Source: Tetramitus jugosus
Lineage: Eukaryota; Protista; Heterolobosea
Length of the DNA stretch: 64,000 nt
Assembly: GCA_937625935.1 (NCBI GenBank)
Contig: OW569376.1
Location: forward strand, 310,001-374,000
Direction: 5' to 3'
The notes under the pieces are model-generated. The model did no database searches, was not told the origin of the DNA, and worked only from the letters and a program-made list of their open reading frames with translations. Of this stretch, positions 817-45,280 are shown piece by piece (within the stretch, counting starts at the first letter, position 1; every line of letters starts with the position of its first letter). Made by a program: the position numbers and the translations under genes.

Positions 817-1063
817 GGTTGCTATGATTCGTATTTGAAGTATTGTTGTTGTCATTGTTATAGTGATGATGATAATCATTGACAATCATATCTTCATCAT
901 CATTGTTATCATCATTGTATGATTGTAGAATGTCATGTGATCTTATGACCATTGCATTGCTATTGTTGTTTTCGGTGTTGTTATTGTTATTATTGTGCTC
1001 AAATGGATCATGGTAATACAAATCACCATATTCATCTTCTTCATCTCCATTCATTCGGCTCAT
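1..1063 (-). CDS. N-terminal part of a low-complexity (N/D/S/Q-rich) protein that runs off the window start
   Basis: Manual translation from ATG at 1063 (MSRMNGDEEDEYGDLYYHDPFEH...) found no stop in the segments read down to base 1. It contains five (S/A)(P/S)FL(S/T)(D/S)S motifs and is absent from the ORF track, probably because it has no stop codon. Confidence 0.7.
776..816. repeat. (TGT)n microsatellite encoding poly-Asn on the minus strand; representative of many coding trinucleotide tracts in the window
   Basis: Visible run of TGT/GTT triplets. Confidence 0.85.
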
Positions 1064-1404
1064 GATTTATTGTTGATTGATTCGGTGAAACATCTATTAG
1101 GAATGTGTATTCGTTTTCTCCAGGAGGTCGTTGCCCGAAAATTCAAACTTTTTGTCGTGCATTTCTTGATTTTTGCCACCTCTTGAAATTCATTGAGGAA
1201 TGGAAAGCGCGGTTTTCTACCTTGTTGTTTATTAATAGCGAAATCGGAGTTTATTGACTCATAGTTCAATGAATTCAATATCGTCCAAGAGTCTCCTCCA
1301 GCTTCGACTCCACTCACACTACCATCTATTGAAACAACAACAGTCATCTCACCCACCCACTCACAACAATAACAACAACAACAACAACAACAACAAATAA
1401 CAAA

Positions 1405-4400
1405 ATGGTCATTACAACAGCATCCATGTACAAGAGTCTTGGTGAGGCATTGGCCATGGAGTCCAGTCATCCACCCAAAATCAAAGAAGCCTACACTCAA
1501 TACCTGTGCTGCATTGAAATGTTGATTGACAATATGAAGACGTTGGCAACCACTGACGACACTAATTTTTCACTTTCAATCGACAAGATGTACTATTTTA
1601 TTCGAGAGTGTACGCAACGGAGTGAACAATTGTTGTTGAGTCATCCTCACTTGTTTAAACAACAACAACAACAATTGTCATCTGCTGCAGCAACACCACC
1701 ATCGTCATCATCTCTCTCCTACATTATAACATCACCAAGATCAACACAATCTGATCATCAGAGCAGTCAATACATACAACAACGCGCAACAAACAAAATC
1801 AATAGTCCTAGCAATGGAACATTCCTCATCTCTGATACATCCTCTACTCTGACTCATAATCACAATTACAACAACAGTAATGATAATGATATGAACATGA
1901 ATAATTCGTATTATATTAACGCTGGTGATAATCATCATCATATGGTACCCACCACGACTATGAAACAAAAGTACAGTACGTACAGTCCGAGTGATCATCA
2001 AGTAATGTATCCCAACATCAATAATCAATCGCAGTACATTGCAGAATACTTTCCCAAGAATCAAATACAATCTCAACAATCACAATCTCAACAACAACAA
2101 CAGTTTACCCATACCAATCATCCAACGATACTTGATTCAAGTGCTCCATCTGTACCTATTCTCCTCCCTTCGTCATCATCATCATCATCATCATACCATA
2201 CAACAAACCATTCTTCCATTCACAATCAAAATAATAATACAAAAAATGGAGATCACATGTTATTGTATCATGATGACCTTCCATGGTCATACACTCCAAC
2301 GAGTAATACTGTCAATCACACAACTGTACCATCAACATCAACCATTGCATTAGCCAACAATAGAAACTCTCTACAATCATCATCAGCACCTCCACCACCC
2401 ATACCACACTCACTCTTGTTCAATCAACAACAACAACAACCAAAGCAACAACAGTCAAAACAACAACAACAATCATCACTCTATCATCCTCATCAGCATA
2501 TTGCCAAGAATGAAATTGAACATTGGAAACAAACATTTCAAAAGTATCAATCCAAGAGTCGATCACTGACTAGAATCATCAATCATCAATCCTTTTCATC
2601 TCTACTCTCTCTATTGTCACTTGTTCCCTTATCATCCTCATCATCAGTATCAGCATCATTAGCCATTCCATCTACCAATCATCATCATCATCACATGAAT
2701 CATCAGAGAAACAACATGGTTCCCTACACATCCATACCATCACTCTTGTATCACTCATTTGATATGAATCGATCCAATGAGATGGAATATGAAGATTGGA
2801 GTCAATCCATGTATGTTCTCCTGCATGGATCACACAAGGATCAAATTCAATTCTCCTATTCCATGTTTGATCCCAATGGTATCGGTTACATTAGCAAGAG
2901 TATGTTTATTCATACAATGACCATGATGTATGAGTTGTTGAATCACATGGGTATTGATTTGTTGATGATTATGATGACAATGAATATGAAGAAGACAACA
3001 ACAACAACAACAAATTCTGCTTCTACTTCTTTTGGTACTACCAATCCATTATTGTACAATGAATCATCACCACAAGCATCTCCATCATCCTTTGTTGCAA
3101 TGATTGAATATCGAATGAGTCAATTGTTTGATTCATTGTTTCTATCATCATCATCATCACTATCATCATCACAACAACAACAACAGAATGTGACTCGCAA
3201 TCAATTCATTAACATTATGATGAACAATGAGAATCGATTCCGATTATCCACACTTGATCTATTCCCTCTTCATCATCATCATCAAAAGAATGAATTGAAT
3301 CATCATCATCATCATCAGACTCATCATCACATGGATGCATCATCATCATCATCATCATTGCCTCCACTCATTCATCGAGTACAGAGACAATTTCATCGAT
3401 CGGGATCACCAGTCATACCAGGCAGCTCCAGTTTTGACAAGGTACTCAACATGATGCTCGGCATTCGAATCGCTCAACAACAAATTACTCAAATGTGGAA
3501 CATGAGACTGTATGGTGGTACTCTGATGAGTCATCCAAACAATCACAATTACAATAATAGTAGTAATAATAATAGTAATAATAATATTAATATGAACAAC
3601 AATGAGAATCGCATCATGAAACTGTATGCTAGAGATTGTAACTACATCATGTCATTTGAACTCCCTAGAGTCATGGCGACATCTAACAATAGTAGTAGTA
3701 GTCATTCTCGCAGCAGCAGCAGCAGCAGTAGTAGTATGATGATGATGGATAGTCTGTTCATGGATCAATCCAATCCTCCTGTTGTACAACAGACACCACT
3801 GGACGATCAACATGGTGAACAAACAAACAGTCAACGATCGTCAAAGAATTTTGTCTTCAAGGATTATGCACCACTGGTATTCCGCAGTATCCGTAGTCGA
3901 TTTGGTATATCAGAAGACGAGTATGCCATGGCTCTCGCACCTGAACAATTATTGGGTAATTTGTTGGTTGGACGACTGACGACTCTGACAGAGAAGATTA
4001 CCGATGGAAAGAGTGGCAATTTCTTCTTTTATAGTCACAATGGTCAATATCTGTGCAAGACGATCTCGGCAGGGGAACTGGAAACATTCCTACGAATTCT
4101 ACCAAAGTACTATAATCACATGTGTCGTTACAAGGACACTCTGATCACACGGTACTATGGTCTCCATTGTTTGAATGACACTGTGTTCGTTGTCATGGGT
4201 AACGTGTTCCAGACGAGCTACAAGATGGATTGCGTGTTTGATTTGAAGGGTAGTACTGTGGGCAGATCTGCATTCACAAACGCAGAAGAGTGTGTCAAGG
4301 CGGACAGTGAGAAATTGAAGAGTAAGATATTGAAAGACTTGGACTGGATAGCATTGCAGAAGAAACTGGCATTGGGTGATGTGAGTGGCAAATTTTTGCA

Positions 4401-4761
4401 TCAGCTCACCATTGATGCCAAATTGTTGGAGGAGTGCGAGATTATTGATTACTCTCTTTTGGTGGGCATACGTAAGTTGCCTAGAGTGTTGCCACCACAT
4501 CATATCGACGAAACGAGCTCACTCCCATTCCATCAACAGTTCGAAGGTGGTATTCTGTTTGGTGACACGGTGTTGTACCTCGGTATCATTGATACTCTCA
4601 TTGAATATGGTGTGAAGAAAAAGGTTGAACACAACATCAAGAGTCTGTACTATGGTGACGGAACAGGTATCAGTGTGACTGATCCAAAGAACTATGCTAC
4701 ACGATTCCTTGCCTTCCTTCATACACAAGTCCCTGGTGATTTGTCCACTATTTATTATTGA
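1405..4761 (+). CDS. Phosphatidylinositol-phosphate kinase (PIP5K family) with N-terminal MIT-like helical domain and NCS/frequenin-like EF-hand pair
   Basis: PIPK motifs FKDYAPLVFRSIR, GKSGNFFFYS, KTI, FDLKGS, LKDLD, IIDYSLLVGI and YLGIIDTL; EF-like segment FDMNRSNEMEYEDW...GSHKDQIQFSYSMFDPNGIGYIS. Confidence 0.9.
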   Translation: MVITTASMYKSLGEALAMESSHPPKIKEAYTQYLCCIEMLIDNMKTLATTDDTNFSLSIDKMYYFIRECTQRSEQLLLSHPHLFKQQQQQLSSAAATPPSSSSLSYIITSPRSTQSDHQSSQYIQQRATNKINSPSNGTFLISDTSSTLTHNHNYNNSNDNDMNMNNSYYINAGDNHHHMVPTTTMKQKYSTYSPSDHQVMYPNINNQSQYIAEYFPKNQIQSQQSQSQQQQQFTHTNHPTILDSSAPSVPILLPSSSSSSSSYHTTNHSSIHNQNNNTKNGDHMLLYHDDLPWSYTPTSNTVNHTTVPSTSTIALANNRNSLQSSSAPPPPIPHSLLFNQQQQQPKQQQSKQQQQSSLYHPHQHIAKNEIEHWKQTFQKYQSKSRSLTRIINHQSFSSLLSLLSLVPLSSSSSVSASLAIPSTNHHHHHMNHQRNNMVPYTSIPSLLYHSFDMNRSNEMEYEDWSQSMYVLLHGSHKDQIQFSYSMFDPNGIGYISKSMFIHTMTMMYELLNHMGIDLLMIMMTMNMKKTTTTTTNSASTSFGTTNPLLYNESSPQASPSSFVAMIEYRMSQLFDSLFLSSSSSLSSSQQQQQNVTRNQFINIMMNNENRFRLSTLDLFPLHHHHQKNELNHHHHHQTHHHMDASSSSSSLPPLIHRVQRQFHRSGSPVIPGSSSFDKVLNMMLGIRIAQQQITQMWNMRLYGGTLMSHPNNHNYNNSSNNNSNNNINMNNNENRIMKLYARDCNYIMSFELPRVMATSNNSSSSHSRSSSSSSSSMMMMDSLFMDQSNPPVVQQTPLDDQHGEQTNSQRSSKNFVFKDYAPLVFRSIRSRFGISEDEYAMALAPEQLLGNLLVGRLTTLTEKITDGKSGNFFFYSHNGQYLCKTISAGELETFLRILPKYYNHMCRYKDTLITRYYGLHCLNDTVFVVMGNVFQTSYKMDCVFDLKGSTVGRSAFTNAEECVKADSEKLKSKILKDLDWIALQKKLALGDVSGKFLHQLTIDAKLLEECEIIDYSLLVGIRKLPRVLPPHHIDETSSLPFHQQFEGGILFGDTVLYLGIIDTLIEYGVKKKVEHNIKSLYYGDGTGISVTDPKNYATRFLAFLHTQVPGDLSTIYY

Positions 4762-4831
4762 TCATTAAACTTATGAGTGTCCAATTGGAAAAAGAATACA
4801 TTTTACTGATTTTGTTACAAAATTATGTTTT

Positions 4832-6358
4832 TTAGAAGATTCTGGCATCGACTCTGAGAACGACACACGAGTTGGTTTGACCTGCAACACCTTCCAAGTG
4901 ACCCGATGTCACAACAACGTACTCACCGCTCTTGACAACACCCTTTTGCTTTTGTTCTTCAATGGCTCTCTTGATAACAGCATCACCACCAATCACGGAT
5001 CCGACAACAACAGGGAACACGTTTCTAGACACGACGAGTTGTCTAGCAGTTTCCTTGTTCTGGGTAATGGCAACAACAGGAGGTGTTGGTCTATACTTGG
5101 CCACCAATCGAGCAGTGTTACCGGACTCGGTCAATGAAAGAATCAAACCAGCACCAATGTCGTTGGCAGTCTTGACAGCAGAGGAAGCAATGGTCTCAGT
5201 GACAGTCACCTTGCCCACAGCCTTGACAATCGAGTCGTACGATCCTCTCTCGTCAATCAAATTCTCAGTAGTCTCACAAATCTTGGCCATGGTTCTCACG
5301 GATTCAAATGGGAACTCACCCTTGGCAGTCTCACCAGACAACATGACAGCATCCGTTCCGTCCAACACTGCATTTGCAATATCAGTCGATTCTGCTCTCG
5401 TTGGTCTAGGATTCACAATCATAGTCTCCAACATTTGTGTAGCAGTAATGACTGGTTTGCCAGCGACATTACACTTGGCAATCATCATCTTTTGTGCCAA
5501 TGACACATTCTCCAGTGGAATCTCCACACCCAGGTCACCACGTGCCACCATGATACCATCTGTCACCTTCAAAATATCATCAAAGTTCTCCAATCCCTCC
5601 GCATTCTCAATCTTTGAAATAATCTTAATGTTTTCACCACGTGCGCCCAACACTTTTCTAATCTCATGAACATCGTCAGCCTTTCTCACAAAACTGGCAG
5701 CAATGAAATCAACGCCTTGCTTGACACCAAACGTCAAATCCAATCGATCCTGTTCAGTCAATGCAGGCAAATCAACCTTGACATTTGGCAAGTTGACACC
5801 CTTCTTCTCACCGAGTTTTCCACTGTTGAGCACAGTGGTGTGAACGAGACCAGCGTCCACTTCAATGCTAGTCACCTTGCATGCAATCAATCCATCGTCA
5901 ATGAGCACAATGTTGCCCTCGGACAACACTCGAACAATATTCTTGTAATCGACGCGAATCTTTTGATCATTGCCCTTGAATCCGTCCTCTGTGGTCAATG
6001 TCAATGTCTGACCCTTCTTGAGTGCCACTTCTGAGCCACTGACTTCCAATTGACCTGTTCGGATCTCTGGTCCCTTTGTGTCAAGCATGATGGCAATCAG
6101 CTTCTTCTTGTTGGATGCAGCCTTGCGTGCATTGGTGATGGTAGTCTTGTGGAATTCGTGATCACCGTGTGAAAAGTTCATACGAACCACGTTGACACCA
6201 GCATCAAACAATTGTTCGAGAGCTTCCACAGATTGTGTCTTTGGGCCAATGGTGGCCACAATCTTTGTTCTTCTAGGGTATTCAGTGTGTGTTGGTTTGA
6301 ATTCTTTGGTGAATTGATGACCGTTGACTTTGATCCATACGTTGGTTGTAAGACTCAT
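4832..6358 (-). CDS. PK: Pyruvate kinase (508 aa from ATG 6358)
   Basis: RRTKIVATIGP, RMNFSHG, DTKGPEIRTG, IISKIEN, DGIMVARGDLGVE, ATQMLETM and DAVMLSGETAKG. Confidence 0.97.
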   Translation of the reverse strand: MSLTTNVWIKVNGHQFTKEFKPTHTEYPRRTKIVATIGPKTQSVEALEQLFDAGVNVVRMNFSHGDHEFHKTTITNARKAASNKKKLIAIMLDTKGPEIRTGQLEVSGSEVALKKGQTLTLTTEDGFKGNDQKIRVDYKNIVRVLSEGNIVLIDDGLIACKVTSIEVDAGLVHTTVLNSGKLGEKKGVNLPNVKVDLPALTEQDRLDLTFGVKQGVDFIAASFVRKADDVHEIRKVLGARGENIKIISKIENAEGLENFDDILKVTDGIMVARGDLGVEIPLENVSLAQKMMIAKCNVAGKPVITATQMLETMIVNPRPTRAESTDIANAVLDGTDAVMLSGETAKGEFPFESVRTMAKICETTENLIDERGSYDSIVKAVGKVTVTETIASSAVKTANDIGAGLILSLTESGNTARLVAKYRPTPPVVAITQNKETARQLVVSRNVFPVVVGSVIGGDAVIKRAIEEQKQKGVVKSGEYVVVTSGHLEGVAGQTNSCVVLRVDARIF

Positions 6359-32802: not shown

Positions 32803-35800
32803 ATGTCCAGTAACCCAATCACGACAATTGACCACAACGGTAGTTTGAATGACAACAGGGATGAGCCAACAACCATCGAATCCTCTGCTGCCTCGCCACC
32901 TTCTGACATTCATGCTGACTTTTTAAAGCTTTTGTCTCTCGTTTTCATTGACGACAACATCAGTCAAAATGAAAGTCACCACGAAAGAGATGTTGTCTGT
33001 CACATGTCAGAGTTTCAGTCGTCTTGTGAATTTATTCAACGATATTGTGCTCCCAATGTTCAGTCATCTGATAGCTTCTTTGCGAATCTAGAGAAGAACA
33101 ACACGGACTTTAAGGGAGCAAAGGATCGAACAAGCTATGTTGAGGAATTGTGGTCAACGATTGAATGTAACTTGAAGGAAATTGTGACACAGAATCCATT
33201 TAGAGAATCTGTTGATGATCAACGTGGCTCCTTTGATGACGAGGCTAATGAAACAAGAAAGGAGAACTTGTTGTTGCCTCTGTTGTCATTTCTGGATGTG
33301 ATCAATAATCTTTGTATGGATTATTTGCAGTTTTTGACGAAAAAGAAGGACACAAATGTGAACGAAATGTTTTTGAGGTGTGCAGTTTTGTTGCATGACT
33401 TATTGTTGATTGTCAACTCGACAAACGAGGGTATCGAGTTACAGTCAAAAATATCGTTGCTATGTGAGCGTGTGTATCTGGCATTTCCGGAGAATGATAT
33501 TGCCTGTGACACTGTTCCAAACAATATTGTGTATTTATTATCAGAGTCATTGCTTCTATCTGCCAAGAAAATTTTAGTGAAGAGAGTGTACAAAATGAGA
33601 AGTGCTCTAGATTTACTGGATTATTCTCAATCCACAGTTTTGCACGATATTCTATTGAGAACAGTCATTTCACCACTGTATCTATCAACAAAAGAAGGCA
33701 TTAAATTTTTGGCTTATGCCTTTAATGTTGATCCCTCTCTGCCACCCTTATTCCACTCTGCAATTGTTCCTCAAATACCACAAGCCAATGAGACAACGAT
33801 TAAGTCCTATGGAGAGTTATACTTTAAGAGTTGGAGAGGTTCTCAAGCCCAATCTCTCCTTCAGATTGAACATAATTGTATTCAAGACTTGATGTTTCAT
33901 GCAATTCATGCCCGAAATCCTACACTCTTCTCAAACCTCAGACTTTTGCTCAATGCTTTTCATGAACAAAAGAATCAAGCTGGCGTAGATGAGGTGCTTT
34001 TGAGACTATATGAGCCTATTCTCTTCCGCTCCTTGAATGTTGCAAACTCACTTGTTAGACGGAATGCGACATGCATATTTGTTGATGTATTTCCTTTGCG
34101 AGATCCAGAGTTCAACAAAGAAGATGCCGAAAATTTGCTTCAAAAACAAATTGGACTGCTGAAAGAAGTATTGATCGATGATTGTCCCTTTGTCCGAGTT
34201 GCTGCAGTGGAAGGATTGTGCAAAATATTAACCCTTTACTGGGAAGTGTTTTCATCTGATGACTGCTTCAGTCTCTTGAAGAAATTGGTAGCCAAGCTTG
34301 CCTATGATGCTAACTCTATTAATGTTCGAGTGTCTGTGTGTAGGGGATTAGCATATTTGCTAGATAACCATCTATCCCACCACGTTCTTAAAAGTAAGTA
34401 GGATTTCTCTTGATTGTCCTGGACAACACACTAATCATCAATTGAACAGAATTGTTACCAAAGCTTGGGTCTCTCATTAACGATAACTCAGCACTGGTGA
34501 GAAGCTCTCTCATTTCACTTCTCCTTCGTATACGTACAGTACGTTCCATCGAATTCGACTCAGTTGTATCTGAAGAGAGTTTACTCGATCGCCTGGTAGT
34601 TGACTCAGAACAAATCAAAGTTCATATCTCCTCTTTGCTTTTAAACTCATACTTTCCATACAATCAGGCCCAATCAGAAATTGTATGTACCTCCATTCCG
34701 CTAATATTTTGATGTTTTCAAAATACTCACACCATTTCTTTTCAAGCTCGAAAGAGTATTAAACTTAGTGTCATTGAATGCCCATGCAGCCAAACAGTTT
34801 TATAGATATGTATTAGAAAGTGTACCTGACTCAGCTCCTGCCAAATTAATCAAGACTATCAACAAACTGCTCCGAAAATGCATGAAAATAGTATGTCCCT
34901 TACTACTACAACTTACGAACCTTAACAATCATTCACCACTAACCGCTTGTACTGTCAGACGGATGAAACCGAACGTTCACAAGAGGATAGTAAATATGTC
35001 AAAATTGCCCAAGATGTCAGTCTCGTCGGCGATCTTATCGAAATCCTTTCCAATACTTTCTCATACATGACAGCACATTTGAATAATACGGAATCTTTAG
35101 AGGTAAGTTCTGTTGTTCTTCCCTATATTCATTCCTTGTTCCATGGCTTACTTTTAGTGTTTAGTTTTTAAGGTCTGAGTTTACGAGTATCTACCTCCGT
35201 GATTTGAACATTAGCTTTCCGACATTACATATCGCGTCTCAAGTATGGGCCATAGCGAGGTTTCTCCCACAAGAGAGTATGGACGTTCTCATCTCTGATG
35301 CCATGTTTAAACTTGAACAAATGTGCAAATCTGGATCGCTACGAACAGACTACGAATATATATTTGAGTGCATAGTTGGGTGGGGCTATGAAGATAAACT
35401 ATTGAGTTTAATACATCGCTATCATGATATCCATATCCGAAAAATCGAGGAGTCCAGACAAAAGAGACAGAAGGTATCACAGAATGATGAAGTGCCACTT
35501 AAAACTAGGGTTAAGCAATCGATGGTGGCATTAACATTGCTGCACTGTACCTTGAAAAATGAGAAACTGTGTACCTATTTAATGAAATCAAAGAAAATAC
35601 TGGATTCAATATGTACATACCAATACGGTGTGATCAGTGAGGTACTTACGAAATATATTGCAACAAACGAAGAAGAAGAGATTATAGACCGCGAAACATA
35701 TGAGATGTACATGAGTATGATATTACATACACACTCAATGGTGATTACTCGGAAGATGCTTCAACCATTACGAACCAAGAAATTTCAAAAGAAGAAAAGG

Positions 35801-37103
35801 AAGGATCAAGACCAACTGTTCGCAAAAGTAAGTGATATCCCTTTCATATTTCGCCCTATGATTAACGATTTAACACGTATGCTTTTAGATGAATCAAACA
35901 ATACCCACCGATATTCATCACCTATTGGTACTGTTCATTAAGATCATTATTCCAACAATCATGGAGAGCTCCGATAATTTTGGTTTAGAAGTTGTTGAAG
36001 AGTTGGGTATTCAATCTGTCAAAAGTGGAAAAGAATACAAGATTGACTTTTATCCTCTGGGTGTAACAATACTGAAAAGTATCTGTTCGTTCATCAACGA
36101 ATGGATTCAAGTAGGCATTATTCGATTTGGAAATGATGAAGTGAGTGACGACCAAAACCCTCAAACCCTTTTGACTTCTTTGTTTGATTCCTTGTGCAAT
36201 CCGAAGAGTATGTAGTTCAAATCTGTCGTTAGTTAGTTTTCTCTTCAGTTCTAACCAAATCAAATAGTGCGCCCAATTCTGCAGTATATTCTACCCGATC
36301 TACTTAAGTCAATCTGCATGATTCAAAATCAGCATGTTTTTGAGTTCCCTGTACAACTCCTTTCTCAACTACTGTTCTCTGCTCCAGAGTTCTTTATTCC
36401 ATCTTTGAGTCCACCAGTCATCCATATGAAACTGGAGGAGGAAACACCCGGTCTTGGTATCAAGTATCCCAAATCTGTGCGCTCAAAGATCGAAAGAGTA
36501 GTTAATCATAGGAGAGACTACATACAACAAATATTGTTGAACTCCTCAAACACTTGGGCCAACGTGATTTATCTAGCTCGCATACTTCTGCAATCCTGTT
36601 TCAATGCACTGCAGGAAAGTTCGGATCAGTCAGAAGTTTCACCCTATCATGCGATTTCACTATCTATTGATCTTGTGCACGAACTGACACTGCATAAGAG
36701 AAAGAAGAATACGAACCAATGCATCACTGCCTTCTCATCCGAACTATGCAATTGGCTACAAAAAATATGTGATAATCTGGGCATCACTGACAAAGAAGAA
36801 CACGAAACAGCAGAGCTAATGTTATGTATCGTGTTGGATCTGTGTGCTCTGGTACTGAACAAGTTCACCCAACTGCTCGAACAACACCAACAATCGCTCA
36901 TGAAGCGTCTATTGGCCAAATTGAAGCTCGATTTGCCCATGATTCTCTCTCCCATGAAGGACCGAGTCAAATTTGAAGAAACGAGGAACAAAATCCAACA
37001 TTTGACTCTGCTATGCACTAAAAACAGCGCTGAAACCCCACAACAACAGCCAAACAAGGAGGACTCAACAACCGCCACCTCATTCGAACTGAGTATTGAA
37101 TGA
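32803..37103 (+). CDS. NCAPG2: Condensin II complex subunit G2 (HEAT); 7 exons, introns 34394-34449, 34683-34746, 34891-34958, 35103-35164, 35828-35888, 36208-36267
   Basis: GVDEVLLRLYEPILFRSLNVANSLVRRNA..FVDVFPLRDP, VRVAAVEGLCKIL..YWE and LAYDANSINVR. Six GTAAGT/GTATGT...AG introns of 56-68 nt join seven ORF-track segments in frame. Confidence 0.9.
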
Positions 37104-37374: not shown

Positions 37375-37905
37375 TGTGTTCTGCTTTCTTTGCTGTTGTT
37401 TTTCGGTTTTCAAGCTGTTTTTTGAAATCCCAAAGACAACTTGACATTTGACGAGTGAAAACTGTAGACAACAGGTGAGATGAACTTCAATGAATGGAAC
37501 TAGTGGAAGAACATTCCGGATGTGATGGACCCAAAGGAATTGTAAGTTTCTGATGACAAAGAGTTTGCACCGTCATACTCATCAATTCTAAGAGAAATGC
37601 CTTCTCCGAGGAGTTCACGTCTAGCCTTCTAAAAGGTCTATCATTCGTAGTTGTGTCAAAATTGTGAACTATCACAAAGTGGCCAACTGCCGTCCATCAT
37701 CCCGAGCTCCGGATAAGGAAAATGAGGACCCCATGGACCTTCGAATTCCTGAAAATTGATAATACTCCCGCGAAGAGCAAGGGAAACGGAAAAATTATCG
37801 CTCGACGCAGTCACGGTTGGCCTGCGTTTTTATTCTGCGTGTTTTTTGCACAACTTTCAACAAAACATCAAAACATCATTAACAACTATTAACCCATATA
37901 ACAAA

Positions 37906-39456
37906 ATGAGAGCTGTGTCCGTATTCATTGCTTTGGCTATTATTGCCATTTTTGCTGTCATGATTCAAGCTTCCGAGTCCAGACACCACAGAGTGTCTAG
38001 ACTTGTCGAGTCAAGAATTGGAAAGCTTCCACTTGCTGATAGCTCCAAGATTGACTTGGACAAGATTTTCAAGTACATTGACACCGTCCAAAAGGTTAGA
38101 GATGTCTTGAGAAACGAAGAATTTGCTGACAAGTTCAACTGGGAAAAGACTGGTGAGTACTTGCAAAAGGCCAACGAAGTCTATGACAAAGTCAAGTCCA
38201 TCAGAGACATCTTGGTCTCCTTGAAGAAGAACAAGTCTCTTTCTGACGAAAGCTTCGACTGGGCTAAGATTGACCAATACTTGAAGAAGGCTGAACAAAT
38301 TGTTCAAATCTTGAAGACTGAAGAAGTCCAATCTGACAAGTTCAACTTCAAGAAGGCTTTGAAGAAGGTCGGAAACGTCGCTGTCAAGGCTGGCAAGGCT
38401 TACGCAAACTCCAAGGGAATCCCTTTGGCTGATGCTGAAAAGTTCAAGATCAAGAAGTTCTTGAAGAAGGCTGGAAACGTTGCTGTCAAGGTCGGAAAGG
38501 CTTATGCTAACTCCAAGGGAATTCCTTTGGCTGATGCTGAGAAGTTCAAGATCAAGAAGGCTTTGAAGAAGATCGGTAACGCCGCTGTTAAGGTCGGTAA
38601 GGCATACGCTAACTCCAAGGGAATTCCTTTGGCTGATGCTGATGCTCAAAAGTTCAAGAACTTCTTGAAGAAGGCTGGCAAGGTCGCTGTCAAGGTCGGA
38701 AAGGCTTACGCAAACTCCAAGGGTATTCCTTTGGCTGATGCTGAGAAATTCAAGATCAAGAAGGCTTTGAAGAAGCTTGGCAATGCTGCCGTTAAGGTTG
38801 GTAAGGCTTATGCTAACTCCAAGGGAATCCCTTTGGCTGATGCTGAAAAGTTCAAGATCAAGAAGGCTTTGAAGAAGATTGGCAATGCTGCCGTTAAGGT
38901 CGGTAAGGCTTACGCAAACGCCAACGGTATTCCTTTGGCTGATGCTGAAGCAGCAAAGTTCAAGAACTTCATGAAGAAGGTCGGAAAGGTTGCCGTTAAG
39001 GTCGGAAAGGCTTACGCAAACTCCAAGGGAATCCCTTTGGCTGATGCTGAGAAATTCAAGATCAAGAAGTTCTTGAAGAAGGCTGGAAACGTTGCTGTCA
39101 AGGTCGGAAAGGCTTATGCTAACTCCAAGGGAATTCCTTTGGCTGATGCTGAGAAATTCAAGATCAAGAAGGCTTTGAAGAAGATTGGTAATGCTGCCGT
39201 CAAGGTTGGCAAGGCTTACGCAAACGCCAACGGTATCCCATTGTCTGATGCTGAGAAATTCAAGATCAAGAAGTTCTTGAAGAAGGCTGGCAATGTTGCC
39301 GTCAAGGTTGGTAAGGCTTATGCTAACTCCAAGGGAATTCCTTTGGCTGACGCTGAAAAGTTCAAGATCAAGAAGTTCTTGAAGAAGGCTGGAAACGTTG
39401 CTGTTAAGGTTGGCAAGGCTTACGCTAACAGCAAGGGTATTCCTCTTTCCGAGTAA
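37906..39456 (+). CDS. Secreted tandem-repeat polyprotein (516 aa); putative precursor of cationic amphipathic (antimicrobial/cytolytic) peptides
   Basis: Signal peptide MRAVSVFIALAIIAIFAVMIQA, three divergent helical modules, then 11 units of 34 aa. No Cys; strong AAG/GCT/TTC/AAC codon bias. Confidence 0.9.
   Translation: MRAVSVFIALAIIAIFAVMIQASESRHHRVSRLVESRIGKLPLADSSKIDLDKIFKYIDTVQKVRDVLRNEEFADKFNWEKTGEYLQKANEVYDKVKSIRDILVSLKKNKSLSDESFDWAKIDQYLKKAEQIVQILKTEEVQSDKFNFKKALKKVGNVAVKAGKAYANSKGIPLADAEKFKIKKFLKKAGNVAVKVGKAYANSKGIPLADAEKFKIKKALKKIGNAAVKVGKAYANSKGIPLADADAQKFKNFLKKAGKVAVKVGKAYANSKGIPLADAEKFKIKKALKKLGNAAVKVGKAYANSKGIPLADAEKFKIKKALKKIGNAAVKVGKAYANANGIPLADAEAAKFKNFMKKVGKVAVKVGKAYANSKGIPLADAEKFKIKKFLKKAGNVAVKVGKAYANSKGIPLADAEKFKIKKALKKIGNAAVKVGKAYANANGIPLSDAEKFKIKKFLKKAGNVAVKVGKAYANSKGIPLADAEKFKIKKFLKKAGNVAVKVGKAYANSKGIPLSE
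38338..39453 (+). repeat. Coding tandem array: 11 copies of a 102-nt (34-aa) unit, last copy 32 aa
   Basis: Unit consensus KFKIKK(F/A)LKK(A/I)GN(V/A)AVKVGKAYANSKG-IPLADAE; 1116 nt = 10x102 + 96. Confidence 0.97.
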
Positions 39457-40806: not shown

Positions 40807-42000
40807 CTAGTATTTAATGGATAGTGTTTTCCTCAAATTCATCGCTTTGTTGATTGTTGTGGAAAGGTCCTTCTTAACTCCATCGAAGCATCCAGATAAA
40901 TCGATGAGTTGGAGAGAAGAGGATTCATTCCTGGTCACAGCCTCGATCAACAAGGTGGCATCTTCCCGAATTAGATTATTTGACAGGTTTAATACCTTGA
41001 GAGAACTATTTTCCTTGAGACCAGAACACAAGAATCGAATTGCCTCTCCATTTCCAAGTGCGTGATTGTTGGAGATGTCAAACTCTTCCAGAGCAATGTT
41101 ACTCTGAAACATGTGACCAAGCTTTTGGGCAGCTCCCTCACTGATCCCATTCCATCCCAATCGAATCCTAGACACTGCATTATTGCTCCTCAATCCTCCT
41201 AATACATGAATGGCTCCTAGAGTTCTCAGCATATTCCATTCTAAATTGATCACCTTAAGTTCCGAGTTCGAACTCAACATTTGACTAATAAACAATCCAG
41301 ATCTTTCTCCCAACTTATTGTAGCTCAGATCGAGATGTCCCAAGGTGTAGTTTTCGGTAAGAGACGAACAGATATCCTCTACATCTGTATCTGACACATT
41401 GTTAGATTTTAACACCAGTTTCTTCAATTTTACATTCCTTAGCAGCATATTCTTCAATACTGCCCCAAGAGTCGATTTTGACCTTCCTAGTCCCTTGTTG
41501 CCCAATCGATTTTTCGATAGATCCAACTCAGTGATTGACTTATTCATCCTCATCACATTCATCAAGACTTCTACACCATCGATAGTTATTGAGTTGTCGC
41601 ACAAATTCAGACTAGTGATCAATGGATTCGATTTAATACATTGTGCGACAGCGATGCAGCCCTTGTCTCCAAGCCCATGCATGGTAAGATCCAATTCAGA
41701 TGTAACCAATTTCTCTACAACCGTCTTCAAAGGAAATATGTAAAAGTCGAAGGATTTACATGCTCTCTCATAAGCTTCAATTCCTCTCCTTGTAAAATTC
41801 TGTTTCTGTTCTTCTGAGAGCTCCATTTTTGAGTAGTCCTCTTGTTCTTGTACATCTTCACTATCTCGGGCCACAGTTTCGTTGCTCACATACTCTGTGT
41901 CGAATCTCAGATCGTCGTACTTTCCTTTGGGTATTTGTATCTGATTAGATAACCTCTTCAACTCTTGTTGAATTAGTTCTTCTACAGTCGTATCATCCAT
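40807..42000 (-). CDS. RNI-like leucine-rich repeat protein (LRRC74-like)
   Basis: 28-aa LRRs (LxxLDLSxNxLGxxG); N-terminal YERACK..P and LDLTMHGLGDKG. Confidence 0.85.
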   Translation of the reverse strand: MDDTTVEELIQQELKRLSNQIQIPKGKYDDLRFDTEYVSNETVARDSEDVQEQEDYSKMELSEEQKQNFTRRGIEAYERACKSFDFYIFPLKTVVEKLVTSELDLTMHGLGDKGCIAVAQCIKSNPLITSLNLCDNSITIDGVEVLMNVMRMNKSITELDLSKNRLGNKGLGRSKSTLGAVLKNMLLRNVKLKKLVLKSNNVSDTDVEDICSSLTENYTLGHLDLSYNKLGERSGLFISQMLSSNSELKVINLEWNMLRTLGAIHVLGGLRSNNAVSRIRLGWNGISEGAAQKLGHMFQSNIALEEFDISNNHALGNGEAIRFLCSGLKENSSLKVLNLSNNLIREDATLLIEAVTRNESSSLQLIDLSGCFDGVKKDLSTTINKAMNLRKTLSIKY

Positions 42001-42067
42001 CGAGGAACCTTGTTTTTTGAAGCGATGAATCCGCTGCTTACTGAAAAAACCACGAATTCGAGCGCAT

Positions 42068-45000
42068 TTATTTCTTTTGAGATTCTTTCCATTCCTTAAT
42101 CTTTTGTTTCATCTCTGTTGCTTCTTCGAGCATGTCGTGTGTTAAATGAGATCTGTTGAATGGATCTGTCTGATCATTCAACAAATGTCTCTCAATTGTA
42201 CTCCGATCAATTACAATCTTGCTGGCTGGGAGAAGAACTGGATCAGACATGAACATGAAGGTAATTGGATCAAGGAATTCGTCTGGAACATCACCCATGT
42301 CTTCTTCTTCATCGAGGATTTGTTGAGCAGCGTTTGTAGCAGCAGTTGCAAACTCTTCAAACTTGTGAATGACAGTGGGAGTTCTTGTTCCAATCTTCTT
42401 CAAGATAGCAATAACCTTGTGGAAGACTTCAGGCTTGAATGAACGAGAGTCTGTTGCAACTGCAGTCACAAATTCTTCGAACTTGGAGAAGTGAACGTAG
42501 GTGTCCACAATCTCTGAGAGCAACTCCTTTGGATTGAAGTTGTATTTCTCTGGGTTCTTGACCTTCAAGTTCTGGCATTGAGGACCTGCCAACTCAACAA
42601 GGAAAAAGTTAAGCATACTGGCAACTCTATCTCTCATCTCAGGTCTCAAGAATGGCTTTGGTACATCTCTACTCAAGTAGGACATCATATGTACAGTTTC
42701 TCTCGCAAGTTCCATGTATCCACGCAATTGTTGTTCGTCTCTTCTACGGACGGACATTTGCTGGTCATTTGGTCTTGTACCGACACCGGTTGCCTCATCG
42801 TATTCCATCTCATAATTACGGATATTGTTCAAAAGTTTCAGAGATTCATCGAGCAAGTAGGTGGCATCATTCAGCATCAAATTGAAGAACTTGACAAACT
42901 GTGTGTTCTTGTTAGTCTCAACCACAAATGCATCTCTATAGGTTTTAAATTGCCACAAGAATTTGAACAGGAGGGAAATGTAGAATCTAGGAGTGAATTT
43001 CTCATAGAATTGATGACTCGATCCAGTGTGTTCCATATCAATGTACAAGTCAATAAATGCTGGCATCAAATGCTCTTGACTTGGTTTGTGGTGCATCAAG
43101 AAGTTTTGCAGAGACATTGGCAAGTCTGTGTCTCTCGAACGATGTAATTCCTTTGGTACAAAAGTACAATACAACTCTGGTACCTTGGCTCTCACGTGAT
43201 TCTTAAGATAGTGATCATAGTGAGTAAATGTGATCAACATTGTAAGAATAAAGTCCAATTCATCACCCGAGGCCAGTGATTCAACACTTCGCTGTGACAA
43301 GAACTTGCACATTTCAATCATGTCCATAACCATAAATTCACTCAGACACTTGTATGAACGAGGAATTTGATCTGCTTGTCCAGGATCCACAATCAATTTA
43401 CCATCCTTGTTTGGTGATGCAGAGAATAGTAAAAATTGACTGGCAAATTTGTAGAACTGCAGCTGTTTCTTGTGATAGTCAGGGTCCAAAATGTGCACCT
43501 CAGCTGCAACAATCATAATCAGCATGCGTTGCATCTCTTGTTCACCTTGCGCATAATTAGGGTCATCTCTTGTAATTCTTCTCATCTCTCTTCTCAAATC
43601 ATTGTAACGCTGGAGGACATGTTGATATTTCTCCAATGTTTTCAGCGCACCAATCTTCAATGCTCTATAACACAAGAAGAAACACTCGGTAATGAAGCTG
43701 AATTCGCGACCCTTATTAAACTCATCCTTATACAGTTCTTTGGCCTCTGGTTCCGTTGCAATAATATGCGTATCATCAGAGAATGACACAAAGCTGTTCA
43801 CCATTGGATAATCACCATCAACAGTCTTGAACTTGTCCGAACCCACAAATGGTTCGCACAATCGTAGCATTAGTGAACAGAAATTGGTCAGGAATGATTC
43901 GCTGGAGCTCGCATAGACATCTTCGTGCATCTTGAGACGAGATTTGTTACCTTCTAGAACAGAGTACAACCATTGCATGGCCTGAGCTCTCGTCTCCTTT
44001 GGTCTCACAAAATTCATAAAAATCTTGTGCAAGAAATCTTGATACATTCGCACTTCACTCCTAATGGTTGTTCTCTTGAATTCCAAGTCCTGTTGTGTCA
44101 TACCATTCAATTGACCACCACCAAAGAACTGTTCACCGACCTTTGGATGATCATAGTAGGCAGACAATCGGAAGAATGGACCCAACAAGGATTGATTCTC
44201 CATGCTGGAGCCGTTCTTCACAACAGAGAGCCACTTTGGATGATTGACCATCAATTGTGCCACTTCCTTGTACTTTGTCAATCGCAACAGGCATGCCAAA
44301 TAGGGATAATAACGATCCAGGAAACTCAACTTGGAAAATTGATTGCTCAACTCTTCCAACACATTTTCAAAAACAATCTTCAGTCGCTCATTGGTATCAA
44401 TCTGTTGAATCACGTGACTCAACACTCTCTCGTCCAATTGAATTGGACTTTGGAGAGCGCCACCACTACCACCTATTCCACTCAATCCACCACTGGTTGA
44501 TTCCTGATCTTGCAACAACATGGCCAATAATTGAGTGGCAGTCATGGGTGACATGATGAAACAATCGGTTTCCGACAAGCACAACACCAAATAGTTCAAC
44601 AACAGATCAATGTACTGTTGCAAGCATTGAATTTTGTCTGGTCTGCTCTTTGCTTCACCTCTACTCTTCTCACGACTCAACTCCTCACTCGATGCAATCA
44701 TGGCACGATTGATCAATTGAATGGCGTCGCTGCACGAACGAATACTCTTCAATTTTTCAAACAAGAGCAGTTCAGCGTGTTGTTCAATGGAGAATTTTTG
44801 ATGAGGTGAGAGCAAGTGTTGTGGAATGGACAATGATGAAGTTGTTGATGATAGATTCAACGTGTTCGTCAACAAGTCGTGCTCAAACTTTTGCTGTGCC
44901 AATTTCAATTTTTGTTCATCACTCACAGATGCTGGTGTAGTAGTAGCAGTTGTTGATTTTTTGGATGGTGGTGTAGAGTCAATGTCCATTGGTTCAGATT

Positions 45001-45280
45001 GTCTTTTAATGGTGGTTGCTGGTGCAGGAGAGTGTGATGATGATGATGTTGCTTGTTGAGTAGTAGTAGGTGATGAAGAGGAGGAGGACGGAGAGGATGA
45101 TGATTTTGCTGCTGGAGAAAATCGGTTCAACATGGCCAAACGCTTGAGACGCATCTCTTCAGGTGTAAGCTGTTGTGCACCGGAGCTATTTGGATCCAAT
45201 TGCTGTGCTTGTGGTTGCTGCTGTTGTTGTTGGTCATTGTTTTCATCAGCATCACCGGCTTTCGCTTTGAAACTAAACAT
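42068..45280 (-). CDS. UFD2: Ubiquitin conjugation factor E4 (U-box)
   Basis: LLGPFFRLS, FITECFFL, EHTGSSHQFYEKF, FFNLMLNDATYLLDE, LKVKNPEKYNFNPK and U-box VPDEFLDPITF..MSDPV.LP..IDRSTIERHLL..TDPFNR. Confidence 0.96.
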   Translation of the reverse strand: MFSFKAKAGDADENNDQQQQQQPQAQQLDPNSSGAQQLTPEEMRLKRLAMLNRFSPAAKSSSSPSSSSSSPTTTQQATSSSSHSPAPATTIKRQSEPMDIDSTPPSKKSTTATTTPASVSDEQKLKLAQQKFEHDLLTNTLNLSSTTSSLSIPQHLLSPHQKFSIEQHAELLLFEKLKSIRSCSDAIQLINRAMIASSEELSREKSRGEAKSRPDKIQCLQQYIDLLLNYLVLCLSETDCFIMSPMTATQLLAMLLQDQESTSGGLSGIGGSGGALQSPIQLDERVLSHVIQQIDTNERLKIVFENVLEELSNQFSKLSFLDRYYPYLACLLRLTKYKEVAQLMVNHPKWLSVVKNGSSMENQSLLGPFFRLSAYYDHPKVGEQFFGGGQLNGMTQQDLEFKRTTIRSEVRMYQDFLHKIFMNFVRPKETRAQAMQWLYSVLEGNKSRLKMHEDVYASSSESFLTNFCSLMLRLCEPFVGSDKFKTVDGDYPMVNSFVSFSDDTHIIATEPEAKELYKDEFNKGREFSFITECFFLCYRALKIGALKTLEKYQHVLQRYNDLRREMRRITRDDPNYAQGEQEMQRMLIMIVAAEVHILDPDYHKKQLQFYKFASQFLLFSASPNKDGKLIVDPGQADQIPRSYKCLSEFMVMDMIEMCKFLSQRSVESLASGDELDFILTMLITFTHYDHYLKNHVRAKVPELYCTFVPKELHRSRDTDLPMSLQNFLMHHKPSQEHLMPAFIDLYIDMEHTGSSHQFYEKFTPRFYISLLFKFLWQFKTYRDAFVVETNKNTQFVKFFNLMLNDATYLLDESLKLLNNIRNYEMEYDEATGVGTRPNDQQMSVRRRDEQQLRGYMELARETVHMMSYLSRDVPKPFLRPEMRDRVASMLNFFLVELAGPQCQNLKVKNPEKYNFNPKELLSEIVDTYVHFSKFEEFVTAVATDSRSFKPEVFHKVIAILKKIGTRTPTVIHKFEEFATAATNAAQQILDEEEDMGDVPDEFLDPITFMFMSDPVLLPASKIVIDRSTIERHLLNDQTDPFNRSHLTHDMLEEATEMKQKIKEWKESQKK

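Follow-up and report, generated by a model that had tools for sequence, protein, structure and literature searches.

Linear antimicrobial peptides such as magainin, bombinin, cecropin and pleurocidin are amphipathic helices of 25-35 residues, rich in Lys and free of Cys, and the magainin precursor carries tandem copies separated by acidic spacers. The precursors of such linear peptides in frogs, insects and fish are processed at mono- or dibasic sites, often with amidation at Gly. The naegleriapores, the amoebapores and the Dictyostelium Apls are disulfide-bonded saposin domains with six Cys residues. Asp-directed release of peptides is known from plants, in which phytaspase acts on prosystemin and phytosulfokine and legumain acts on cyclotide precursors.

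Multi-peptide precursors occur in both animals and amoebae. The cupiennin-type complex precursors of spiders consist of a signal peptide, a propeptide and many related cationic linear peptides, between which lie short anionic linkers that contain a recognition motif of four residues; Arg stands at both ends of each linker, and cleavage follows Arg (PMC7889660, PMC8290080). Naegleria fowleri likewise cuts a pore-former precursor into separate peptides, and naegleriapore B is derived from a multi-peptide precursor (PMC11542183). In Trichomonas, laterally acquired NlpC/P60 enzymes (DL-endopeptidases) help to outcompete bacteria (10.1101/320382) and an Lcn972-like peptide is the homologue of a beta-sheet bacteriocin (PMC12612818). 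The amoebal killing peptides that we found described are saposin-like or bacteriocin-derived, and animals are the main known source of precursors of linear helical antimicrobial peptides.

Here we analysed a 64,000-nucleotide stretch of the genome of the heterolobosean Tetramitus jugosus, a protist of soil and groundwater (contig OW569376.1; hereafter the window), which contains a gene for a secreted-type polyprotein with eleven cationic cassettes. The original prediction, made from the letters of the DNA, was that this gene encodes an animal-style precursor of linear antimicrobial or cytolytic peptides. Our reading, which we hold to be probable on the strength of sequence comparisons, is that the polyprotein is cut at Asp into membrane-active antibacterial peptides, which relatives would deliver together with wall hydrolases.

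A transcribed single-exon gene

The gene occupies positions 37906-39456 on the plus strand as a single, intron-free open reading frame running from the ATG at 37906 to a TAA at 39454-39456, and its product of 516 aa (55.8 kDa, pI 10.2) contains no Cys. The features are as follows, with the end of the signal peptide estimated by eye:

37866..37905, plus strand: 5' untranslated leader, with the mRNA start near 37866 (adaptor as a loose end in one contig of run X16)
37906..39456, plus strand: single-exon coding sequence of the 516-aa secreted-type cassette polyprotein (RNA contigs in three runs; strong codon bias)
37906..37971, plus strand: putative signal peptide, aa 1 to about 22, cut after Ala22 or Ser23 (hydropathy; similar hydrophobic leaders in relatives)
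37972..38040, plus strand: basic pro-piece, aa 23-45, ending at the first Asp border, L-A-D
38041..38130, plus strand: near-neutral amphipathic module N1, aa 46-75, net charge -1, moment 0.48, ending F-A-D
38131..38247, plus strand: amphipathic module N2, aa 76-114, net charge +3, moment 0.52, ending L-S-D
38248..38337, plus strand: near-neutral amphipathic module N3, aa 115-144, net charge -3, moment 0.46, ending Q-S-D
38338..38433, plus strand: cationic cassette 1, aa 145-176, net charge +7 between Asp borders
38434..39351, plus strand: cationic cassettes 2-10, nine exact 102-bp units, aa 177-482, net charge +6 or +7 each, closed by G-I-P-L-[AS]-D (29-38 bits each with the Willaertia/Naegleria HMM)
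39352..39453, plus strand: cationic cassette 11, aa 483-516, closed by G-I-P-L-S-E and followed by the stop codon

Public sequencing data show that the gene is transcribed. In the oligo-dT RNA run X16, a template-switch adaptor was joined to the sequence at 37866 (in one contig only), so that the ATG at 37906 is the first of the mRNA. Part of the window was present in 20 public runs from 15 studies, of which nine runs are recorded as RNA, mostly soil metatranscriptomes, and contigs of three RNA-type runs covered the gene from about 37866 through the array. Contig depth was 975-4897 over the unique 5' part compared with 2-52 over the neighbouring genes, whereas a DNA run was nearly flat; the runs were chosen for holding the gene and contig depth cannot rank genes, so the high values are a hint of an abundant transcript and are read no further. 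Codon usage agrees with this hint of high expression: AAG accounts for 106 of the 111 Lys codons in the polyprotein gene, compared with 40-62% in five neighbouring genes.

The units of the array are under purifying selection (pN/pS of 0.16 among the in-register DNA units). All 11 units differ from one another in DNA, mostly by synonymous changes, which rules out an assembly artefact. A bacterial contaminant was ruled out as well, because the flanks (32803-37103 and 40807-45280) encode condensin II subunit G2, an LRR protein and UBE4B/Ufd2, ordinary eukaryotic housekeeping genes, and the relatives that carry enzyme fusions lie in eukaryotic contigs. No second cassette gene or local cluster was detected within the 64-kb window by a cassette HMM scan. 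The same locus in another strain (L028:297-929; 95-96% identical) contains two cationic cassettes only, which is either a real short allele or the result of array collapse when short reads of low coverage were assembled. A contig whose match is confined to the 35 bp at 38429-38463, flanked on both sides by the same foreign sequence, was seen in one RNA run and in one DNA run; it probably represents a paralogous gene sharing a border and the start of a cassette.

Eleven cationic amphipathic cassettes and three further modules

The first 18 residues are strongly hydrophobic (mean of 0.99 on the Fauchere-Pliska scale), and the N-terminus looks like a signal peptide. The predicted layout of a leader followed by 11 Cys-free units was thereby recovered, with the units following an exact 34-aa period that appears in DNA as a 102-bp array at 38333-39444 with a higher-order period of 306 bp. 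The units contain seven distinct 26-aa cores, as had been proposed, each with a net charge of +8 or +9, no acidic residue and a mass of 2.77-2.87 kDa (predicted, about 2.7-2.9 kDa); the commonest core, present in four copies, has the nine Lys residues originally counted.

The best 18-residue hydrophobic moments of the cores ranged from 0.52 to 0.59, and that of the commonest core peaks at 100 degrees and was matched by only 1.3% of 20,000 shuffles. The helix is amphipathic as predicted, but calling it clean slightly overstates the case, since F2, V16 and A23 are hydrophobic residues outside the listed positions. Mean hydrophobicity of the cores is low (0.07-0.12). The best 18-residue segments of the cores carry a charge of +6 or +7 at a hydrophobicity of 0.05-0.21, lower than that of strongly lytic peptides, which points to a preference for anionic membranes with little effect on animal cells and makes the term 'cytolytic' doubtful.

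Three near-neutral modules at aa 46-144, with borders like those of the cationic units, had gone unmentioned in the original prediction. They may be co-acting or pH-dependent helices, which is a guess.

An Asp motif at the module borders

The proposed animal-style processing was not borne out: KR, RR and RK are absent from the protein, and no Arg occurs after residue 100. All 15 Ala/Ser-Asp pairs instead coincide with module borders, compared with a mean of 4.8 in shuffles (P=0.0005), and the remaining eight Asp residues are never preceded by Ala or Ser. Cutting at these borders would yield the pro-piece, three amphipathic modules of 30-39 aa and eleven cationic cassettes of 32-34 aa with a charge of +6 or +7.

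The same signal was seen in 23 family proteins. The border motif reads [ELQ]-[AS]-Asp, with E, L or Q at P3 in 142 of 176 distinct sites; as the motif was defined from the same sequences, P2 and P1 are fixed by construction, and the independent evidence lies in P3, spacing and phase. Ninety-nine of the 160 distinct internal pieces are 30-39 aa long. Among pieces of 25-45 aa, 98 of 118 (83%) reach a moment of at least 0.45, compared with 18% of shuffles, and across the family the five residues preceding the border Asp carry a mean charge of -1.3. From the sequence pattern we infer that an Asp-directed cut is the primary processing step, most likely after the Asp, because the conservation lies on its upstream side. 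One cargo type contains an internal [AS]D. No candidate for the Asp-specific protease was found.

These borders also redefine the unit. The cationic cassettes invariably have a tail G-[ILV]-[PQN]-[LA], two residues after which Asp or Glu follows in 50 of 52 cassettes, and other cassette types in relatives end N-[FW]-D, with no terminal Gly. GIPL is therefore part of the conserved cassette, and the proposed 26-aa unit ending at Gly is doubtful. The short acidic spacers originally described do contain two acidic residues each in the window protein, but their GIPL part is a conserved cassette tail in all relatives.

A cassette family in Heterolobosea

Of the more than 20 uncharacterised homologues that searches revealed, nearly all combine a signal-like leader with the same cassette. 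Willaertia magna supplies at least 11 of the named members, and the others belong to Naegleria lovaniensis and N. fowleri; every named member is annotated as 'hypothetical' or 'uncharacterized'. Further members were found in eukaryotic contigs; W. magna, too, is a heterolobosean. Cassette homology holds in both directions. An HMM of the window units matched the cassette in the relatives and not in false search hits, and an HMM built from 13 Willaertia/Naegleria cassettes picked out each of the 11 window units, with scores of 29-38 bits, and had no other match in the window (control: 45 bits for a real unit against 12.5 bits for the highest-scoring of 2000 shuffles). About 40 of the 55 hits of an exhaustive search look unrelated; those inspected were Sel1-type repeats with a short Gly-x-Pro motif, and none reached 15 bits on the cassette HMM. 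The number and order of cassettes vary between genes, as expected of separable units.

The earlier statement that no such protist family had been described held as far as the literature was concerned, since our search, which did not cover subscription journals, found no paper describing the family or naming its members in the main text; the protein is not, however, an orphan. The family is not pathogen-specific, because a member is present in N. lovaniensis, which is non-pathogenic, as well as in the human pathogen N. fowleri. The N. fowleri protein FDP41_005569 (P0074) has no InterPro match and was detected in an extracellular-vesicle proteome at 10.4% coverage as one of 2,270 proteins (PMC10558758 Table S2), which shows that it is translated and little more, and is silent on cleavage.

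Several relatives depart from the plan of the window protein. A closer relative (P0001, L003:76-1065) shares the N-terminal neutral modules, and two of its cationic pieces are 69-aa double helices in which the middle Asp is missing. In the W. magna gene ABK040_012163, the annotated model omits a 207-nt in-frame stretch (L027:6397-6603) that contains no stop codon and encodes an extra border and cassette; without splicing, the frame stays open over 389 aa, and the intron call is probably spurious. Other W. magna members, including that at L010:10001-11044, carry Arg-rich, Pro/Arg-rich and small Cys-containing pieces between the helical cassettes, with the same border motif, and these pieces resemble other classes of antimicrobial peptide. 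A 448-aa secreted-type protein (P0030, L009:33-1379) is likewise built of cationic helices and acidic linkers, but its border motif is another one and the cassette HMM does not match it; it possibly represents a second, convergent family.

Comparison with established families gave no assignment. The window protein had no match to antimicrobial peptide families in Pfam or NCBIfam and none in the PDB, and a Willaertia member gave only sub-threshold matches to the Ocellatin and Styelin models. A bombinin-precursor cluster was among the nearest by features in the ESM Atlas (0.76), a weak lead. The LEA-like or other described-family match that the original prediction had asked about was sought, and LEA, perilipin and apolipoprotein repeat models in Pfam and NCBIfam did not match the protein, whose unit measures 34 aa with a net charge of +6 or +7. 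Whole-protein hits in Pfam and NCBIfam (YpeB, YycE and others) were rejected as sums of weak repeat matches, which vanished with a single unit or the N-terminal part as the query.

Enzyme-type domains fused to cassettes in relatives

In eight relatives the chain ends in an enzyme-type domain, six of the NlpC/P60 type and two with a putative Zn domain of the Hedgehog/DD-peptidase fold, and all eight begin directly after [AS]-[DE]. The window protein itself has no enzyme domain. One JGI sample accounts for three of the NlpC/P60 fusions and W. magna for the other three; five of the six are complete with Cys and His, and one of those of W. magna, P0070, is truncated. P0002, P0003 and P0004 match PF00877 at 52-61 bits (cut-off, 23), P0069 and P0073 also carry PF00877, and the one NlpC/P60 cargo searched by structure matched solved peptidoglycan endopeptidases of clan CA, family C40.

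The other cargo, a C-terminal 130-aa domain in P0005 and P0006, shares 62-63% identity with small actinobacterial proteins and has no Pfam match. Its alignment-based model (pLDDT of 95) gave a Z score of only 5.0-7.4 with its top eight structural matches, all of which have the Hedgehog/DD-peptidase fold, among them Hedgehog, VldE, MepA, LdcB, a Zn DD-peptidase and VanX. The Zn-ligand pattern His-x6-Asp plus a third His (H74, D81 and H123) is conserved in at least 90% of the aligned rows. The model thus makes a Hedgehog/DD-peptidase (M15/LAS) fold likely, and a Zn peptidase activity can be inferred from it. The locus of P0005 (L005:10001-10942) and the loci L011-L026 show an unannotated domain family, with no Pfam model, that is common to actinobacteria and eukaryotes.

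The fusion genes sit among eukaryotic genes, one of them adjoining TOR in W. magna. By guilt by association, the fusions are the strongest independent sign in the sequences that the cassettes are aimed at bacteria. The antibacterial multi-peptide precursor of the original prediction thus gained a conserved, shuffled set of cassettes and eight wall-hydrolase-type fusions in its support.

Discussion

The following course of events is proposed. The polyprotein would enter the secretory or lysosomal route and lose its signal peptide, and an Asp-directed endoprotease would cut at the [ELQ]-[AS]-D borders, freeing eleven cationic helices of 32-34 residues together with three near-neutral ones. Exopeptidases may trim the freed helices further, and dipeptide trimming could follow the Asp cut. 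The cationic helices would then bind and permeabilise the anionic membranes of bacteria, either inside the food vacuole or immediately outside the cell, while relatives would co-deliver bacterial-type cell-wall hydrolases by means of the same cassettes and borders. Tandem repetition would raise the dose per transcript.

An intact chain is an unlikely alternative. Here the helices would form a polycation of beads on a string that coats anionic surfaces (bacterial envelopes, lipid, or a cyst or granule matrix), the Asp motifs would be helix-breaking hinges, and the cassettes of the enzyme fusions would be targeting tails. Such a chain would account for the lack of basic cleavage sites, the exact 34-aa period, selection on the linker as strong as that on the helix (ratios of 0.13 and 0.11), the undivided double cassettes of P0001, and a low hydrophobicity that suits surface binding. 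It sits poorly with the relatives, whose linkers vary widely in length yet always end in the same motif, which combine unrelated module types in any order, and in which the motif falls exactly before the enzyme domains; nor does any LEA, perilipin or apolipoprotein family match, the Pfam hits being repeat artefacts. By analogy with the granule-lattice proteins of ciliates, which are processed matrix proteins, the chain could also be cut into pieces that are not weapons and serve as the matrix of granules or extrusomes, or as packaging or sorting elements for co-stored hydrolases. An abundant product is suggested by the strong codon bias and by the presence of RNA contigs in many soil metatranscriptomes, and cationic and neutral or acidic helices, which occur together, could co-assemble. 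Against this, the folds of both cargo enzyme types are known to cleave bacterial walls, the cationic cassette resembles a lipid-binding helix in charge and moment, and no homology to such matrix proteins was found; we regard a matrix role as improbable.

The two remaining alternatives keep the peptides as released effectors. In a promelittin-type route, cutting after Gly, removal of X-Pro/X-Ala by a dipeptidyl peptidase and C-terminal amidation would give amidated peptides of 26-27 residues with the same function. All 11 spacers of the window protein can indeed be peeled as two to four X-[APS] dipeptides, the ten internal ones ending in E-K, Q-K or A-K. This route nevertheless requires a Gly-Ile cut with no basic site, fails in the 28 of 41 homologous cassettes that allow none or one such dipeptide, and conflicts with the conserved GIPL tail and with the Gly-free ends of the other cassette types, so that it is very unlikely. 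Action mainly on eukaryotes (competing protists, fungi or oomycetes), or signalling between amoebae, could be read from the large gene set of W. magna; low hydrophobicity with high charge favours anionic bacterial membranes instead, the cargo enzymes point to peptidoglycan, and we give such targets hardly any credence. We therefore retain release at Asp of antibacterial peptides as the preferred reading.

A wider picture, on which we are evenly divided, is that heterolobosean amoebae possess a modular, innate-immunity-like system of their own, in which a lineage-wide set of secreted polyproteins made of shuffled cassettes (linear membrane-active helices, peptides rich in Arg/Pro or in Cys, and wall hydrolases gained by lateral transfer) would be opened by one Asp-specific protease. 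This would be the first cecropin/magainin-like family of linear peptides in a protist as far as our searches reach, with an origin independent of animals and a new processing code. A conserved family in Naegleria, Willaertia and their soil relatives would show convergent invention of that weapon in bacterivorous protists, based on another cleavage code and combining the peptides with wall hydrolases in one chain. The cassettes are defined, synthesizable candidates for the killing of prey by amoebae and for the unexplained activity of the W. magna biocontrol lysate; the family may be a natural source of new antibacterial peptides, and it points to an Asp-directed maturation protease.

Compared with known systems, the window protein resembles the spider precursors in its leader, its pro-piece and its tandem Cys-free cationic cores with anionic linkers, and differs from them in its Asp-ended borders, in the lack of Arg after residue 100 and in the absence of sequence homology; enzyme cargo occurs in its relatives, whereas none is described in the available parts of the spider reports. 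The cassettes share with the magainin, cecropin and pleurocidin peptides the character of Cys-free, Lys-rich amphipathic helices, in tandem copies as in magainin, but, unlike the frog, insect and fish precursors, the polyprotein has no basic sites and matches no antimicrobial peptide family in Pfam. With the naegleriapores it shares a lineage and, on the proposed reading, the design of a multi-peptide precursor, while the absence of Cys from all 516 aa and of any saposin match in Pfam separates it from the saposin-like pore formers. As in the Trichomonas toolkit, bacterial-type NlpC/P60 domains (PF00877) are found in a protist, here as cargo of the relatives only; the accessible portions of the Trichomonas papers report no cassette polyprotein for those enzymes and peptides. 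Although the precursors are not homologous, the proposed release at Asp in place of basic sites recalls maturation by phytaspase and legumain in plants. Judged from its sequences, the family is apparently an undescribed form of multi-peptide antimicrobial precursor, characterised by Asp borders and an optional cargo of wall hydrolases.
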